Of a DNA stretch of 64,000 nucleotides, positions 19,345 to 34,627 are shown one piece after another (within the stretch, counting starts at the first letter, position 1; every line of letters begins with the position of its first letter). The notes beneath the pieces are model-generated. The model did not search any database and was not told the DNA's origin. It saw only the letters and a list, made by a program, of their open reading frames with translations. Position numbers and translations under genes: made by a program. Source of the stretch: Hormiphora californensis (Eukaryota; Animalia; Ctenophora); contig CM035352.1 in assembly GCA_020137815.1 (NCBI GenBank), positions 2,852,001 to 2,916,000 on the forward strand, in the 5' to 3' direction.

Positions 19345-22300
19345 TCAAAAGTCATCATCATATTCAAAAGCGGGGTTTTCGATCCCACTCAGTGGCCCTG
19401 TACATTTCTCCCCCAGCCCGTGTTGTGTCCAGGCAACTCTAGATTGTTCTCTCAGTGACGTCACAGGGCTGCTCTCTCTGAATGACGTCACAGGACTGCT
19501 CTCTCTTGAGGGTACGACCTCCTTTCTAAAGTGTCTGTGGGTGAGGCGCTGGGAGATGCTCAGGGTGAGAAAGATGACACACAGCACTATCAGGATAATA
19601 AGGGCACTGAGGAACAGGTTCCGTTTAGTCTCCTCCAATCTCTCTGCTGTCTCGTCGTCATCTGGCGGCTCTGAAAGGAAGGGAGAGGGGTTAGACAGAG
19701 TTTGTATCGGCCCGGTCCGGAGAGGGCAGTCTTTTGAGAGACAAGGAGTGAGCTGTCTCACAAAAATTGTGACGGCTAAGAAAACTTCTTTAGGCTTTTC
19801 AGACACATGTCAAAATAAACTAATTTGGGAGGTTAAGTTTAGGTCGTGTCGGTGTGGCCCCAGACAAATCAGGTTTCAAGAGATAAGGGTCTAGTTGACA
19901 GGTTTAACTAAGAGTTAGATAAGCAGGTTGTTGTATGAAACCTGTATGTTATCTCACCTTGAACAGGTTGACAGGTGTTGTCAGGTGGGGCGGGGGACCA
20001 TTCCCCACTCTCATCACATGTCACCTCACTCAAGGTATTCAAGGTGTACCCTGGGTCACATATCACACTTCCCGTGTCACCTGAGAAAACATAATTTAGG
20101 TGTCCCTTGGTAACAATGTTAACCTTTAACTACGGGTCAATCATCAAAAATCTTCAAAAAGTCTGTCAGGTTTGGTAAGGTTTGTTTGGGGGGGGGGGGG
20201 GGGGGTGCTGTAAAGATTAAAGTGAGAGTGGACCGACACAGAATTTGACAAGGTTGTTGTAGGTAGTAGAGATTAGCTTTCTGAGCATTTTGCGTTTTTG
20301 CCGCTCAAAATCGACCCACCCATCACTGAGATATTTTTGTTATGTTGGGAGAACTCCTGTTTAATCAGTATGTATAAAACAGAATAAAGTCGGATTTTTT
20401 GAAGTTGTCACCCCAAAATGACCGTGCATGTGAAATTTATCAATTTTGACGCGCACACCACACGTTAACATGTGATGTGACGCGCAAAAACTTTCCGCGC
20501 ACGAAAAGGGGGGTGACAACTTCAAAAAATCCGACTTTAGAAACACTCGTCGTGTTTTACTAGCACATTCTGAATATAAGCAGTGAGTTTGACATGTCCA
20601 TGCACAGAAGCAGGGCAATGCAAGCCAGCATATCAAAAATTTAAAGAATGTGTTAGTAAAACACAAGGATTGTTTCTATCCTGTTTGATAAATATTGATC
20701 CAGCAGGAATTCTCCCAACATAACAAAAATATCTCTGATGGGTGGGTCGATTTTGAGCGGCAAAAATGCAAAATGCTCAGAAAGCTAATCTCTAATACCT
20801 ACAACAAACTTGTCCATTTCTGATCCGGTCCACTCTCACTTTAATTACCTTCAACAGGTCTATCAACTCCGTCAAAGACGATGTTTCCTCCCCTTCCAAC
20901 GGGTGTCGATTTATCACAATCTGTAAATTATATGCAAATTAATATTTCGCTGTCACACTGTGACTCACAGTAACATAGAATCATTCAGTGGTCATGGTTA
21001 CACAATGGGCAATGAATCCAAATGAATTTCACTTATTTGGGCAATATCACACTTGTTACAGTGCTCAAGAGAGAAATCACGAATATTATGACCATGACTT
21101 ACATTTGAGGCAGGCAGGTGGTGGTGACTCCCAGACACCCTTATCAGTGCATCTCACCACCTCAGGCCCGTCAAGGTAGTAGTCAGGGTGGGTACAGGTG
21201 AATTCTATAGAGTGCCCCCTGCCCGTGTATTGGGAGGTAGAGTTGAGGACCTGGAACTTGCCTGGTAGTGGCACCTCACACACTGGAAAATAAAAGGAGT
21301 TATTCTCAAGAAATAGTTTGATAGTTGGAAAAAGAAGGAGTATGTCCTACTCAAGTCACGTTCAATTATAATCAAGTCAATTATGATCGTAAATCGTAAT
21401 TATGAAAATTAAACTCACTAGAAAGGCAAATCTTCCCAAAAAGCCTATAACTCCACCTCCCATTCGGCAAACACTCGATCTCTGTCTCATCACCCCCACC
21501 CTCTTCCAGTCTCGGTGTCACCTCGTAACCATGGTGACAGGTGATCTCTATGACGTCACCAGTCACGTGTTGGGTGTCACGTGATGTGTTGAGAGATGCA
21601 TGGGGAATATTCGGTGTCCGACCACAAACACCTAGAGAAGTAAAAGGTTGGTATTGGTAACTTCAAATGAACCACTTTCTTTAATCGTCTATAACAGTAG
21701 TTGAGTCGATAAAGAGGCGATCAGTTAAGCCTTGTTCGACCCTGTTTCACCGTGCGCCGCACGGTGAAACAGGGTAAAGGAGGGTTAGAACATAACAACC
21801 GATCGATATATTTTCAACTCACGTGTTAGACAGTTATGTCCAGTCCATCCTTGTAGACAGATCTTATCCCCCGTGACTGGGTCACATGTGTAATGCCCCT
21901 GATTATCGTCCCTCTCCTCACACCAAATACTACAGTCTTTGTAGTAGTGGTCCTCACATATCACCTATGAGGGGTGAAAGTGTAAATACTGAGGCTAACC
22001 TGGTTGGTTTGGTATGTTATAAGAGAGAGAGAGGGCCGAGCAAGGCAACCGGTATCAGCTACAACACAATAATTATTGTGAGCACTTATATCACATGTGA
22101 TGAGTTGTCATGTGAAGGGTGCTGCTGCACCCTGCTGGCCCTCATTAGGGAGGGTGACAGAGAACTCACATGACGTCGCGGGAATTGTAATTATAATTCT
22201 AATTCTACGCGGGCACATCATGTGAAAATTAATAAATTTCTAGAAATAATGTAATATGAAGCCTGGTATAATCCGTATATATTCGTCAGACAATAACACC

Positions 22301-23617
22301 CTGTCAGAGCATTGGCCTGACAAATAACACCTGGAATAATTTTCTGGCACGTTTGATAATCTGAGTGTGTACCTGGTAAGAGAGGGTGATTGAGGCACCA
22401 CCGCTAGTGAGGGTTTCATTGTACACGATCCCAGTTGTAACATGCTGTTTTATCTCCCGTTTAGGTAGCAACACCCTGGTAAACCCTGTTGAGTAGTCGA
22501 ACACCTCTATTGTCATATTCAGGTGGGTCAACTTATCCTGGGGATTGGGGGGGGGGGATAGAAATCAGTAGATCAGTATGTGTTCGATTCTGATAATTGT
22601 TGTACTGCACTATTATAGGAGAGAGATAGGTCACGTGAAGTTGATTTTGCCCTGACACGCTGTAGATAACATATTGGGCCCATATATTGCCCTAATATTG
22701 TTATCGCTTAGTAATGTGCACGGCCCTGTGTGTGCTACCAATATGTACCTACATTTATAGGAGCAGTTATGTTGAGGGGGTTGTCAAAAGTAACCCCTGG
22801 TCGATCATTTAGTGCTCCTCGTCCTTGTGGCAGGTAAAGATGCTCCGAGAATTCGATCCTTTCTGAGGTGAACCTGCAAAAAAGGTTTTTATAAAGAAGC
22901 ACAATAGTTTGATTTATAAAGAAGTATTTTCTCCCTGTCGATTCTATTTTGAGTGATAAGGTAAAAGGGGGGCCTTAAAACGTCAAGTAACTTAAGCCTG
23001 CAGATAGGAACCGGCATTGCCAAAACACACAACATCTTATGGAAGCAGTGTCATAATATTCATGTGTCACTGCCACACCCTATTGTACCACTGTCATGGG
23101 GTATCAAATGATGCCAGTTTGTGGTCCCCATACTTGGAGATAAAAACTATTTTGGTATTTTGGGGAGTCGAACACTAGCTAACTACTAGGAGATAAAGAT
23201 GAAGTGGCCGAGGTCAAACAGGGGGCTGTGGAAATAACATCTGTCAAACCGTGGCACATACATGGGGATGATCCAAAAAAAGAAAGATGAATAGTAGCTT
23301 ACCCCTGTATGCTTGGACTGGTAAACTTTGTTTTTATCTTAACCAAACACCCCGTATCCACATCACAGGTTAAATCATTCTGGAGACTGTTCCCTGGGTT
23401 TTGCAGCTCAAGTAGAACAAGCTCAACGTGACCGAACCCAGCGACAAGTCTGATCTAAAAGATGAGGGAAGTGGTGAAGGGGATTAATGGGAATCAGGGT
23501 GCGGAAACTGGACAGTAGGAACCGATAATACTCGGAAACGCATTGTAGTGTTTTTCACTGGTAATGTCTTACCTGCAATGTAAACAAAATAAGCAAAACA
23601 AAAACTAACATAACCAT
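19345..23617 (-). CDS. Delta/Serrate-like (DSL) Notch-ligand-like type I membrane protein: SP-MNNL/C2-DSL-3xSushi(CCP)-TM-cytoplasmic tail, 512 aa
   Basis: Ten GT-AG exons in compatible phase: 23617-23573, 23454-23303, 22873-22753, 22537-22373, 21964-21823, 21631-21419, 21282-21103, 20920-20849, 20080-19958, 19670-19345 (1539 nt). SP MVMLVFVLLILFTLQIRLVAG. MNNL-like FGHVELVLLELQNPGNSLQNDLTC...FDNPL...TSGGASITLSYQ. DSL VICEDHYYKDCSIWCEERDDNQGHYTCDPVTGDKICLQGWTGHNC. Three CCP modules (C..C..GY/YY..C...G.W...C). TM LFLSALIILIVLCVIFLTLSI. Confidence 0.9.
20221..20840. mobile_element. 620-bp MITE with TTAA TSD and AG termini (Kolobok-like), in an intron of the DSL gene
   Basis: ttaa|agtgagagtggaccg...cggtccactctcact|ttaa; ~150-bp imperfect TIRs; internal inverted repeat ~20387-20538. 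Confidence 0.8.
21733..21776. repeat. Short intronic hairpin
   Basis: accctgtttcaccgtgcg-c-cgcacggtgaaacagggt. Confidence 0.75.
22301..22323. mobile_element. 23-bp solo unit of the CTGTCAG micro-MITE family
   Basis: ataacacc|ctgtcagagcattggcctgacaa|ataacacc (perfect 8-bp TSD). Confidence 0.85.
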
Positions 23618-23858: not shown

Positions 23859-24002
<144 letters not shown>

Positions 24003-28728: not shown

Positions 28729-31700
28729 AAGAGAGGGAGAGAGTGTGTGTGAGAAAAAAGAAAGAGAGAGAGGGGAAGAGAGGAAAAGAACTCATTCCAG
28801 CACAATCACCTCGATCCTGTTTGGATTGTGGTTGTCCCGCCTCTGGTCCGGTGTACAACTGAAGAGAGGATGGGCGATGTCGGCAACTCCTAATAAGCTC
28901 TGTCGGGAACTCTCCAGCAGATTCAGTTATCAGTTCTGAAATAAAATAGATATATTGGAATGGGTTTTGCACAGTAAATTGAAGTGCACGGAATTTATAG
29001 ATGAAATATTCTAATTCGGAGAAAGTTATCTGTTCGGTAAATCAATGATAAATTTACCGTACGTATTTTGTATCAGTGATGGACAGGAGGATTGTCGCTA
29101 AAACAGATAAACCTAGATATTAGTAGAGTCGATAACTACATCGACCTCTCCCAATTGTTCCAGTTTTTGTCACATCAGTTTCGAGCCTCGACACGACCTC
29201 TAAACAGGTGTTACTTTTTCACAAACTGTTTTCATCTTGGTGTAATCAGCAGTTGAAATGTTGTTGATCATAACAAAAACCTGACTAAATTTTTTCAACT
29301 TGGGGTAAAACCATGGGTGTCAAAAGTTAGCTCTAGGTCCCCTGAGTAACCATCCGGAGACTCCAAGAGATATTTCAAGCCGTTCTCCTGTAATCATTAA
29401 TCCCGGTAGAGCACATATTTGAGTATGGACGTACGTGCAATTGCCTACAACCTCAACTTTAATGTATAACGTTAATGTGCGTCTCTCTCTTTTCTCCCCC
29501 TTGAGAAAGAGTTATCTCGCGCGGCGCAACCGCACGTGCGGTTTTTCCAGAGAGAGTGAGAGACATACAATAACATGTAAACAGCCTGCCAGCGCTCACG
29601 TACGTCCGCATTGTATTTTTTTCTCCACCGGGATTAATGATTACGGGAGAACGGCTTGAAATATCTCTTAGAGTCTCCGGATGGTTACTCAGGGGACCTA
29701 GAGCTAACTTTTGACACCCATGGTTTTACCCCAAGTTGAAAAAATTTAGTCAGGTTTTTGTTATGATCAGCAACATTTCAACTGCTGATTACACCAAGAT
29801 GAAAACAGTTTGCGAAAAAGTAACACCTGTTTAGAGGTCGTGTCGAGGCTCCAAACAGATGTGACAAAAACTGGAACAATTGGGAGAGGTCGATGTAGTT
29901 ATCGACTCTACTATATTAATAAACTGAATCAAATGTTTCTCACCCGTGGGGAGGGTGTTATCAGGGGTATCTAGGACACAGTACGCATGGCCCCTCTCCA
30001 CTCCCTCCTCCCCACAATCCACCGGGGCTGCAGACGACGCTATATAACCTGATTATGAAACATGCAGTTAGCTGAACCGATCTTATTGAATTCAGGAGAC
30101 GTTATATCGAGGTTGTCATTTCAATGACATGTATTGTTGTCGTGGGATATAAAATAGAATAGCACTTTGGCTTCAAAAATATCCTAATTAGTTCTTACCA
30201 GGGTTGCAGTTGACTTTGAGCGAGGATCCAAGGTCAAGATCAAAAGATGGGCCGTTGGGAATAAATCCCACGCACTTCGTTCTCTTACAGATACCTATAA
30301 GATTAAAGTAGTTGTAAATGCCCCAGTTTACCCTAATATACGTAAAAGCCACCCGAGTTAGAACTGTTTGGCGGCGCCCATACCCCAATTTGATTCTCAA
30401 ATCGACCGCGCGATTGATTCTCAAATCTGAGCGTGCGACAGTGCGCTCAGATGTGGTCGGCGGCGCCAGACAGAGTTAGAAACTTTATTAGTACTTTGAC
30501 AGATATTGCGTGTCTTACTCACCAGGTTTTCTGTCATACAGATTGTTTCCCAGGCAGGTGATAGCCCCAGCTCCAATCAACTCAAACTCGCTCCGACATG
30601 CCAGGTACAAACTCCCTCCCGCAGGTACCTCTCGTTCCAGTGGTGGCACAAAGCCTCCTTGAAGAACGGGTACAAAACATGGACCAGCCACTCCTGTAAC
30701 ATGGGGAGGTTTGATGGAGAATGTCGGCCATACTACTATCATGAGAGTACCATACCTTACTCTCGTTTTTTAAGAAACGCTTTAGTAAGAAACTTTTTTA
30801 TAAGAAACTTTTCAAATGTGAATCACATAATTCAGAGACACCACAACAAAATAGAACACCCCTAACTTGTTTAGTTTCTTGATAAAGGAGAAATTCTTTT
30901 TGTTTTTGGATTGTTTACACCTGTAGTTTCCTAGAAAAAAAGTATCTTATTTAAAAGTTTCTTGAAATATGCGAGCTTAATTAACGAGAGTAAGGTATTT
31001 GGTAATCGACATAATTCCGTTATAGCCAAATGGCAATCGGAATGCACTTACCACCACATGTTCCTATTTCCATATCAAATTCCCCATTACCCATACAACG
31101 AGCAATAGTGTTACCCCGGGACTTATGCCCCTGAGGGCATTGTAGGGTAGTGCTGTCACCCTCCAGGATCCAGCCTGTTTGGGTCAACTGACCAGGACCG
31201 GAGAGGGGTGCTACCAAACATGTCACATTTCCTGTAGAGGATGCTGGATGATAGAGTGGGAGATAGGGAGATGGAAAGTATAGTTATCTGGGTATGTTTT
31301 AGACTGAGGAGAAGCTCCCAAGAATCATACCTGGTACACATTCTCCCAGCGTCTGGTTTAGTCGATCTCCCATACACTTGGCAATATCATTCCCAATCAC
31401 AACATAACCATCCTGAGCAGAGGGGAAGTTACGATTAGATTTAATTTCTAGGATAGCACAAATCCTTGTGTTTTTGTACCTTGCAGGTAAGCGTGTAGGT
31501 AGATCCTGGAGCAAGCGAGTAAGGTGATCGTGATGAGGCATTGTTTCGTTCTATCTCACAAAATCCATAACTAGAGCATTCACCCAGTACCTTATCCAAC
31601 TTCCCTGCGTAAGAGTATGATAGAAATGGGAGCTAGGAAACTGAGCTAGTTTTAAGACACATGAAGTACTGCACGACACATGAAGTACTGCACGACACAT

Positions 31701-34627
31701 GAAGTACTGCACGACATGGAGACTGTAGAACCCTGCTGTATTGCAGGTACCACTAACCAGATCTGGTACACGTAGCAGACTGGTGCCCGTTGGGTAGTCC
31801 ATAGTTACAGGCCATCTGAACAACCTCACCCAGGGGTACCTCCTTTTTAAAGTTGGTGTAACCGTTAGGGATATCGGGGAGGGGACACCGCAGCGTCATC
31901 TCACATCTGAGGGAGGGGGATCGCAAATCATCTCTCGGTGTATCTGTTTTTTTTTCAATATCTCTCCCCCTCTCTCCCCGATGAACTAAAATACCAAATC
32001 TATTAGATCAACTATCTCTGTTGACTAAACCTCCTTCCTTCTTTTGGTTACGAAATAACCCCTTCGCGCGCTGGCAAGGGATGGGTAACTTCGTAACCAA
32101 TTCCTTCTATTCTTCCCCGAATTCTCGTTCAGCTACCTGGGTATGGTGTGTGTATGTGTGTGTGTGTATGTGTGTGTGTGTGTACCTGGGTATGGTGACG
32201 TCATAAGTGCCATTGTTGAGGCAGGTCATCTTGCTATTCCCACCCCTTGCTATCTTGTACCCTCTCTTGCAGAGAATAGTCAGTACTGAACCCTCGTAAA
32301 CCGTACTACGCAGATCGTACGATATCCGCGTTCCTAGAGTGAGTATTAAGAGAATGTAAAAATATTATCACGATAGTACTGCCAAAATGTCAAAACTCAG
32401 ACTTCCCTCCCATGCGACGGAAAGTTTCTTTAGGGATTCGAAACATGCTAAATTCACAATTTACCTATTCGAGCAGGCTGGTAAAGTTCAATATCCGCAT
32501 TCCCTATCTCCGGTCTCTCACACACCCTCTTACACTCCCCAATGGTGTCATTGTAGAACCCGCCCTTCTTGCAGTGTGCCTCGGGCTGCCCTATGATCAC
32601 GTGATTATCAGGACAGGAGAGAGTTATCATGGTGTCCTCGTAGACCCTTCCTCCCGGGGTGACTTCACCTGAAGGAAGGTGTGTGTTGTTCATTTACTGC
32701 TGAAAGAGGGTATTTTGATGTTCAATACTGGATCTGGGACACATCATGGACAATAATTTATACCGATCCTGCACTACCTTTTGCTGCGATGATTTCAGGG
32801 CAGGTTAACATGGCGCACACCCCCAAGATGTGAGCATAGGTGCCATTAGGTCTACACTCCGAGGTTTGGTTGCCCACTACCGTCCACCCGTCCGGGCAGG
32901 CGATGTGGATCTCTGCACCAACACGGATCCGACCTAAAGGATATCATTTAGGAACTTGAGATGGTCTCCTTGGTGTATACGACTTTCAGAAAGTGTGTGG
33001 TGTAAACCTAGCACACACATACCTGATGGTCGAATGATGCCCTCTGCCCCAAAATCTCCACTGTACTCCTCACAATGTGTCATGTTCTGTCCCAGGTTGG
33101 TTGCATTGAACTCTGCCACGTTGGAGCTCCCTCCCGGTCTGTACCGGGGCCCCTCCGCAACTTGTCGCTGGCGGTCCGTGTCGGGGATACATGTTCCCAG
33201 GGGGTAGTCAAACACACCTACATCCAAACACCTGACCAGGGACATTATTGCTCATTACAATTAGACACGAACCAATTACTAATTGTATCCATTTCTGTCT
33301 CTGTTTCTGTCCCACTGCACTATCTCGCTGTCTCCCTCTTTCTCTGTCCATTTCTCTCCCTCCCTCTCCTATAATACTCGGTACTAACCTGACATGACTG
33401 TTTCCCACAAGATGGTGACTCTCGTTACAATAAATCTGTACAAACGTCCCCTCTGGAACGGAGGGTAACAGGGGCACGGTGTATCCAAACAACGGCTGTC
33501 TCAATCCACATCTCACAAAGGTGGTCTTTATACACGGTCCCACACTGTATACATCATACGTTCCATCATCCTGACACCAGGCACTAGCAGGACCCTTCAA
33601 GTTCCACCCTATTTCACAGTTCACAAAGACCTTCTGGCCTGCCCGGGGTCTCCCCTCAGGTAACACCGCTCCGTCCACCACGGTTAGTTGAGGGCAATAG
33701 ACAGGCTCGCACGTGCCAACTTCCCTATCATAGGTGCCATCGGGGAGACAGGTAGCGGAACCCCATCCCGTAACTTGGTATCCCTTTTCACATGATGACA
33801 ACGTTATGACGTCACCCGGGAACACCGGCCAGTTAGTTGATGACGTCACGTTACCTGGTAACCCTGCACGTGACGTCACGTTACCTGGCAACCCTGCACG
33901 TGACGTCACGTTACCCCGGGCAACGGATACTTCTGGACATCCCTTGACACACTTCCCCGGCTCTTCATCACACGTCCAGTTAGCCTTGGTGAGGATGAAT
34001 CCATTATAACACTCGGCTGTAAAGTGGGTACCGTGGGAGGGTCTAGCGAACCCAAAGTTGATCCTGGGAGCCCTGCAAGCCCCACACCGCCCCTCCTGGT
34101 CCACGATGGTTCCATTTGTGAAACAAGTCCTGGTACTGCCACATGCTCCCACATAGGTCACGTGATCCGAGAACACACGTGTAGTGTGGGTGTCTGTGGG
34201 CACGTGACAGTCACGTGACACACATATTGGAGGGGTGAAGTTTGGGGTGCATAGAGCTGGGGATGTGGCCATGAATCCCGGGTCACAATACGCATGGACG
34301 GTAGTGTTGTGAGGCACTAAACCAGATGGATGGAGAATTCCACGGTCCGTGTCGGGGGAGACAGAACACAGGGGCACACAGGAACCTGGGGAGAGAGGGA
34401 GGTATTACAAAAAGGATGTACATGGCAAAGCACCCACTACACATAATGAGGGAATTGGAAGAGTCAGTGGCGCAAGTCCAGCCCCCCAGCCCCCAATAAA
34501 CCAATTTGTTGTATTACCTACAAAGGTGCCTAGGAAGAGAAGAAAACGCAACATTTTAACAAGTTTTTACAGCTGCCACTACTGCATTATATGACTTGGA
34601 GAAAGAGGTAGAGAGAGGTAGAGAGAG

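Follow-up and report, generated by a model that had tools for sequence, protein, structure and literature searches.

Does a ctenophore genome encode a Notch ligand of the Delta/Serrate/LAG-2 (DSL) family? This question is raised by a gene at positions 23617-19345, minus strand, of a 64,000-nucleotide stretch of the Hormiphora californensis genome (NCBI GenBank assembly GCA_020137815.1, contig CM035352.1, positions 2,852,001 to 2,916,000; hereafter the window). That no activating ligand could be identified is a main reason why ctenophores were thought to be without a working Notch pathway (PMC12166595; bioRxiv 10.1101/2025.09.30.679519); ML21438a was dismissed and a cadherin-like candidate was proposed (bioRxiv 10.1101/2025.09.30.679519). 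No ligand was reported for Mnemiopsis, and an uncharacterised 'Delta' was mentioned for Beroe forskalii, for which the main text gives no architecture (EvoDevo 16:8, 2025; PMC12166595). Both studies discuss ligand-independent or cadherin-based activation as alternatives (PMC12166595; bioRxiv 10.1101/2025.09.30.679519), and the doubt over ctenophore Notch ligands that was voiced in the original prediction for this locus is supported by the open literature to late 2025. Delta proteins were defined by the presence of an MNNL and a DSL domain (eLife 2018; PMC6040629). The analysis of the window and of the genome suggests that the locus holds a ctenophore gene, present in one copy, that encodes a diverged member of the DSL ligand family, a reading to which we assign a probability of roughly 55%.

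The gene model was rebuilt from the window sequence and contains ten predicted exons separated by introns that are all of the GT...AG type. The predicted protein consists of a signal peptide, an N-terminal domain (N-domain), a DSL domain, a stalk of complement control protein (CCP)/Sushi modules, a transmembrane helix and a cytoplasmic tail, which are distributed over the exons as follows:

23573-23617, minus strand: exon 1, ATG and first 15 residues of the signal peptide (MVMLVFVLLILFTLQ), donor GTAAGA
23303-23454, minus strand: exon 2, remainder of the signal peptide and beginning of the N-domain (GHVELVLLELQNPGNSLQNDLTCDVDTGC...); MNNL similarity reaches significance only here
22753-22873, minus strand: exon 3, middle of the N-domain
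22373-22537, minus strand: exon 4, last part of the N-domain, with ...ASITLSYQ at its end directly ahead of the first DSL cysteine
21823-21964, minus strand: exon 5, complete DSL domain, residues 162-208 (Pfam PF01414)
21419-21631, minus strand: exon 6, CCP/Sushi module 1, C211-C277, phase 1-1 (PF00084, 34.0 bits)
21103-21282, minus strand: exon 7, CCP/Sushi module 2, C281-C337, phase 1-1 (PF00084, 30.0 bits)
20849-20920, minus strand: exon 8, first half of CCP module 3, from C341, which supplies the first cysteine of the module; too short for a Pfam match of its own
19958-20080, minus strand: exon 9, second half of CCP module 3 (C371, C385, W391, C400; PF00084, 32.0 bits)
19345-19670, minus strand: exon 10, acidic juxtamembrane stretch, transmembrane helix, cytoplasmic tail and stop codon TGA (19347-19345); no Pfam family

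The exons add up to 1539 nt, i.e., 512 codons and the TGA, with no internal stop, by which the ten in-phase exons of the original prediction were reproduced and its protein length and the coordinates of the DSL exon (21964-21823) were matched exactly. The donors of exons 1-9 read GTAAGA, GTAAGC, GTAGGT, GTACAC, GTGAGT, GTGAGT, GTAAGT, GTAATT, and GTGAGA and all acceptors are AG; for exon 3 the donor GTAGGT following position 22753 is the only choice that preserves the reading frame. An in-frame TAA is located 16 codons upstream of the start ATG in exon 1, and the boundary at the 3' end of the DSL exon and all those downstream of it are in phase 1. The topology, which was read from the translation and not obtained with a dedicated predictor, is that of the type I membrane protein first proposed, with hydrophobic residues 1-22 as signal peptide and a transmembrane helix at about residues 423-443 followed by the basic stretch RLTHRHFRK. 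The cytoplasmic tail, expected at about 70 residues, has 69; it contains two lysines (in FRKE and GEKC), a duplicated RESSPVTS motif and the C-terminal sequence NPAFEYDDDF, which includes NPAF. No known binding box for Mib or Neur was recognised in the tail.

Pfam scans and searches were run exon by exon, and exon 5 matches the DSL family PF01414 with 50.4 bits (E 2.6e-13; curated cut-off 24.2), on par with the 44-53 bits reached by the DSL domains of the Deltas retrieved for comparison. All six DSL cysteines (C164, 172, 176, 188, 197, and 206) are present and the motif RDD..GHYTC..GW.G..C is kept. A phmmer search of exon 5 against all PDB sequences returned 12 matches, all of them to DLL1, DLL4, Jagged-1, Jagged-2, Serrate or Delta (E 1e-8 to 3.5e-6); the canonical DSL motif that had been noticed by eye is therefore borne out by the Pfam score, the six cysteines and PDB matches to Notch ligands only. 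In the N-terminal ligand constructs of the PDB the match lies at chain positions 147-214 and here at residues 162-208, i.e., at the same distance from the N-terminus. A scan of the genome with PF01414 gave 44 matches (the genome scans covered 110,691,255 bases in 45 contigs), with exon 5 as the best of them (49.2 bits, E 8.7e-11) and among the very few that lie in a short exon. Exon 5 scores 50-59 bits to gastropod Delta-like DSL domains, whereas none of the DSL-like repeats in the same genome gives more than 26 bits, suggesting that it encodes an old, conserved DSL domain rather than a by-product of a local expansion of cysteine repeats. Judged by sequence, it is the only canonical DSL domain in the H. 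californensis genome.

The N-domain comprises about 140 residues and is located directly after the signal peptide and directly before the DSL domain. It was compared with a purpose-built MNNL profile of 40 domains, seeded with three Pfam-verified MNNL domains, against which the exons were scored separately. Exon 2 reaches 13.2 bits at profile positions 2-38, a score that none of 2000 shuffled sequences attained, while exon 4 has 1.4 bits at positions 93-105 (LNMTIEVFDYSTG; 48 of 2000 shuffles, P 0.024) and exon 3 has -0.1 bits at positions 76-84, which is not significant (122 of 2000 shuffles, P 0.06). These are the top three of the nine exons on this profile, and their matches are collinear with a near-constant offset of 17-21 residues. 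Among 1601 six-frame segments of the window the frame of exon 2 ranks first, with 13.1 bits versus 6.3 bits for the next (E 0.007). Comparison with MNNL by hhalign gave P values of 9e-5 for exon 2 and 0.003 for exon 4, and in the ESM Atlas exon 4 showed a weak lead to a C2 cluster at 0.83, with none for exon 2. Each of exons 2 and 4 occurs only once in the genome. The end of the N-domain, ...LSYQVIC, resembles the sequence ...YSYRVIC of DLL4. Hence, the N-domain has the place, the size and a first strand that fit MNNL, yet it appears too diverged for an MNNL call exon by exon, and we put the odds that it is an MNNL/C2 domain at about two in three. Of the MNNL/C2-like domain originally claimed, the part encoded by exon 2 has a significant match and the matches of exons 3 and 4 are weak, so that the claim is supported only in part.

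What sets the gene apart is the stalk. The Sushi matches of exons 6, 7, and 9 all exceed the Pfam cut-off for PF00084 (20.7 bits) and each of the three CCP modules has four cysteines and the conserved tryptophan, in agreement with the three modules first read from the translation. The match of exon 9 spans profile positions 26-56, the module being split from exon 8 by a phase-1 intron. Between C206, the final cysteine of the DSL domain, and C211, the first of CCP module 1, there is a linker of four residues, and the linkers between the CCP modules have three residues. The three modules occupy the place at the usual DSL/EGF1 junction where epidermal growth factor (EGF) repeats stand. Altogether, four domain matches above the Pfam curated cut-offs follow each other in order on the same strand within 2.1 kb and are joined via phase-1 boundaries, which argues that the arrangement is not due to chance. 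A literature search for a DSL-domain Notch ligand with Sushi modules found none described, and neither of the two recent ctenophore studies mentions Sushi (PMC12166595; bioRxiv 10.1101/2025.09.30.679519). Sushi was found in 0 of the 140 nearest DSL proteins, the partner domains of which are EGF types, MNNL, VWA, and Fibrinogen_C; this supports the earlier statement that no DSL ligand with a CCP stalk is known.

A HMMER search of 1.84 billion representatives with the DSL exon resulted in 919 matches. The closest single-domain matches are short open reading frame (ORF) fragments from ENA assemblies with 70% (P0037), 66% (P0043), and 62% identity (P0058). All three depart from exon 5 after ...CLT(S/R), apparently by reading into an intron at the same boundary, and they probably represent the same exon in other species; the 5' end of P0043 reads ...PIQ/VICEE, consistent with the same acceptor. 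P0037 and P0058 probably lie on one contig, because both come with a longest contig of 521,249 nt, and the gene may be duplicated in the species that bears them. Next in the ranking are canonical gastropod Deltas of MNNL-DSL-EGF architecture with 54-61% identity in the DSL domain, among them proteins from Elysia crispata (KAK3772768.1) and Littorina saxatilis (delta-like protein C, XP_070193377.1) as the nearest by sequence, followed by cnidarian proteins with MNNL and multiple DSL domains. DSL exons from JGI metagenomes were considered as orthologues and rejected, as they are 49-57% identical and their intron positions differ. These JGI contigs (L036-L051; Ga0056..., Ga0126..., Ga0209...) carry animal DSL exons of the type ...LYCDANYYSSDCSVYCVA.D.D..GHYTCDPVTGN..C, which start about six residues before the first cysteine and end inside the DSL domain.

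Compared with Delta and Delta-like proteins such as human DLL1 and DLL4 and Drosophila Delta, the predicted protein shares the type I topology, the signal peptide, an N-domain of about 140-150 residues, the six-cysteine DSL domain and a short tail, whereas it differs in the three CCP modules. Several findings weigh against its placement among the DSL ligands. No EGF repeats follow the DSL domain, exons 6-9 encoding Sushi modules instead, and hence there is no DOS motif. Pfam MNNL (PF07657, 157 positions) matches none of the exons; it also has no match in a six-frame scan of the genome, a scan that does not show absence of the domain. The domain composition expected at the outset was therefore obtained for the DSL domain, for Sushi in three exons and for the EGF-less exons 6-9, and not for MNNL. 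Canonical MNNL domains have six cysteines and the N-domain has two, exons 3 and 4 are individually not distinguishable from noise among the 1601 segments of the window, and phmmer searches of exons 2 and 4 against the PDB returned no Delta or Jagged ligand and only repeat-protein noise such as DARPins, so that the likeness to a Jagged1 string pointed out before is not significant on its own. The residue preceding GHY is glutamine here versus phenylalanine in DLL4 and Jagged1. Finally, no full-length orthologue was found in the protein libraries searched, which included the Pleurobrachia bachei gene set.

Some of these points have parallels in other DSL proteins. Glutamine before GHY is also found in the gastropod Deltas P0090 and P0103. 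The Caenorhabditis elegans proteins LAG-2 and APX-1 act as Notch ligands and have a divergent N-terminus; their EGF repeats are few or absent and a DOS motif is missing. They are nematode-specific, keep at least one EGF repeat and are without CCP modules. As these ligands lack a DOS motif, its absence here is not disqualifying, and a reduced architecture can signal. The uncharacterised Nematostella vectensis protein XP_048577079.1 (P0086) resembles the H. californensis protein in having a DSL-ligand head, an EGF-less, non-EGF stalk and a transmembrane helix, and differs in that its stalk is rich in serine and threonine, that it has two DSL domains and that its MNNL domain passes Pfam (54.9 bits). 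Membrane proteins with DSL domains and no EGF repeats are thus found outside Bilateria as well, and the CCP stalk remains unprecedented.

The alternative that survives best, which we nevertheless consider unlikely, is that the gene encodes an adhesion or recognition receptor specific to the lineage, which has a DSL fold but is unrelated to Notch. Such a receptor would fit the absence of EGF/DOS repeats and of a Pfam MNNL match, CCP modules being typical of adhesion and complement-type receptors, and ctenophore Notch may work without a DSL ligand (bioRxiv 10.1101/2025.09.30.679519). Moreover, most of the other PF01414 matches in the genome sit in long ORFs that encode membrane proteins with multiple repeats. 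In these proteins a C2/MNNL-like domain at the N-terminus (GTVEIKFLKYSNPDCDDPSGC...) is combined with CxxGWxGxxC repeats, 2-10 DSL-like repeats, a transmembrane helix and a tail in which EPLYADND is repeated; the orthologues from P. bachei have a signal peptide. Members of this family were found at the following positions in the genome:

C7:6084721-6086316 (L007:550-2145): multi-DSL member
C7:6092518-6093618 (L025): multi-DSL member
C7:6089311-6091875 (L006): multi-DSL member
C4:819319-820668 (L005): multi-DSL member
C4:812257-814290 (L003): multi-DSL member
C8:4897904-4899097, 4903309-4904511 and 4895082-4895738 (L024, L027, L028): multi-DSL members
C9:5019617-5021683 (L002): multi-DSL member
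C11:3111058-3112683 (L008): multi-DSL member
C3:726866-728389 and 732117-733599 (L004, L019): multi-DSL members

Pfam recognises only DSL in this family. The N-domain of the member at C7:6084721-6086316 scores 18.7 bits on the purpose-built MNNL profile, and its AlphaFold2 (AF2) model is a beta-sandwich (pLDDT 89, pTM 0.82) for which Foldseek retrieved C2 domains including the Drosophila Delta C2-DSL-EGF1 structure (7ALK, rank 4), Jagged-1 (4CC0), Jagged-2, DLL4, and DLL1; ctenophores thus have C2(MNNL-like)-DSL proteins that are missed by Pfam MNNL. For a paralogous ORF of the genome the nearest proteins are from P. bachei (EukProt EP00116), with 28-88% identity, which fits a pleurobrachiid ctenophore as host. 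Relatives of the family include P. bachei sb|3463186 and the Nematostella 'protein draper' XP_032232843.2. They share with the gene studied here the signal peptide, an N-domain that is C2-like in the family and probably so in this gene, DSL-type modules, a transmembrane helix and a tail, and they differ in being mostly single long ORFs with degenerate DSL-like repeats and without CCP modules. The possibility that the gene is a recent offshoot of this family was rejected, since a profile of the family N-domain misses exons 2-4, hhalign gave a weak result and the DSL similarity is as low as stated above. The multi-DSL proteins may be what was dismissed as 'MlDelta-like' in Mnemiopsis. Together with the EGF-less DSL protein of Nematostella, they make the gene less isolated than had been held at first.

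One point against a Notch-unrelated receptor is that the DSL domain is far nearer to those of bilaterian Deltas than to the repeats of its own genome. In addition, its position right behind the N-domain is that of the DSL domain in true ligands, and its RDD..GHY..GW motif is intact. To our knowledge, no Notch-independent function has been described for a canonical DSL domain, which also counts against this alternative.

A second exon-sized DSL-like module was observed at C3:8903450-8903578 (L015:1489-1653, minus strand; 34 bits; CSTGYYGDECGVNCVANTVRYSCNETTGERICKEGWKGKQC), with an exon for a transmembrane helix and a basic stretch downstream of it (L015:927-1214). This locus may encode a very small DSL membrane protein; within 2.4 kb upstream no N-domain was found, and a glycerol-3-phosphate dehydrogenase-like gene is located there.

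According to a further explanation, which is clearly less probable than a Notch-unrelated receptor, two transcription units were merged in the model, or a short secreted protein of N-domain and DSL is the main product, to which the CCP stalk is not joined. If the exon 5 donor is read through, a stop is reached 11 codons later, so that a secreted form of about 220 residues is possible, and a search for orthologues with the first CCP exon, exon 6, was empty; this search and one with exon 4 were limited by word and query lengths and their lack of a candidate is uninformative. However, the exon 5 donor is the consensus GTGAGT, the 1/1 phases are compatible across the downstream exons and intron 5 has a length of only 191 nt. 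Reading of the minus strand, not a systematic search, showed no further start codon followed by a signal peptide between the DSL and the CCP exons, and within 6 kb there is no other plausible partner upstream of the CCP exons.

That the gene is an unexpressed or decaying copy, as the missing orthologue in the P. bachei gene set might suggest, is very improbable in view of ten intact exons free of stops and frameshifts, the retention of all cysteines of the four disulfide-rich modules, the 62-70% conservation of the DSL exon in other assemblies and the insertion of a young miniature inverted-repeat transposable element (MITE) in an intron and not in an exon. This element is located in intron 8:

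20216-20845, no strand assigned: MITE with 121-nt terminal inverted repeats, filling most of intron 8, non-coding

It carries a nested insert of about 150 nt with a perfect 30-nt hairpin (20385-20414 / 20510-20539). In a genome search for the MITE the 40 candidates that were scored, out of 1377 at first look, gave 160 matches with 86-99% identity on many chromosomes, and these copies show that the locus is native to the genome and not a contamination. The check for EGF repeats covered minus-strand open frames of at least 70 residues in 19345-23617, and the only one besides those of the gene, at 20364-20675, lies inside the MITE. A long (CT)n/(GA)n microsatellite is found at 23861-24000, about 250 nt ahead of the start codon, a type of tract that is common across the window. 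Further upstream, 6.5 kb from the gene and on the same strand, several open frames with CCP-like cysteine patterns are found at 30191-31998 of the window, none of which reaches Pfam Sushi at E 0.01; they could belong to a neighbouring CCP gene and be a possible source of shuffled exons.

The genome also encodes a Notch receptor. The Notch gene is located on another chromosome than the DSL-Sushi gene, at about C9 3617800-3628300 on the plus strand (L053:2882-9398, L055:3-3244), and encodes calcium-binding EGF exons (DVNEC, DENEC..CKNGGTC, ELNEC), LNR modules and ankyrin repeats. Another locus with LNR modules at C2:4320654-4323029 (L032:301-2676, minus strand) was rejected as Notch; it is a single ORF of 791 residues with Stealth CR1/CR2 and two LNR modules and represents a GNPTAB-like GlcNAc-1-phosphotransferase. 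The same genome has a Neuralized NHR exon as well as a Mind bomb-like gene that encodes two MIB_HERC2 domains.

It is possible, and we propose it tentatively, that the gene encodes the long-sought ctenophore Notch ligand, with an ancestral-type C2-DSL head on a CCP stalk. On the reading as a DSL ligand-family member, the N-domain would be a much diverged MNNL/C2 domain, and the head formed by N-domain and DSL would bind calcium-binding EGF repeats of the host Notch, in the manner seen in complexes of DLL4 or Jagged1 with Notch1. The three rigid CCP modules would act as a spacer and take over the role of the EGF repeats in other animals. The tail with its two lysines and an NPxF motif may be ubiquitinated and endocytosed, thereby generating the pull that opens Notch, for which the Mib-like and Neuralized-like genes would be available. 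Alternatively, the DSL-Sushi protein might act in cis as an inhibitor. The architecture is explained by exon shuffling: CCP exons can take the place of EGF exons with the frame kept, because the boundary at the 3' end of the DSL exon and all later ones are in phase 1.

The gene provides a concrete Notch ligand candidate for ctenophores, and with Notch, Mind bomb-like and Neuralized-like genes in the same chromosome-scale genome the question can be addressed at the bench. The companion family of C2 and multi-DSL proteins shows that ctenophores are not devoid of proteins of the MNNL/DSL type. The product of the single-copy gene would be the first DSL protein found with a CCP stalk, which would show that the EGF stalk is replaceable and provide a clean example of phase-1 exon shuffling. 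If the proposed reading is true, the ligand would have been missed in gene sets because Pfam MNNL fails and because the Pleurobrachia gene set lacks it. Juxtacrine DSL-Notch signalling would then be older than the split of the ctenophores, with the EGF stalk being dispensable, and it could no longer be held that a functional Notch pathway is missing in ctenophores.

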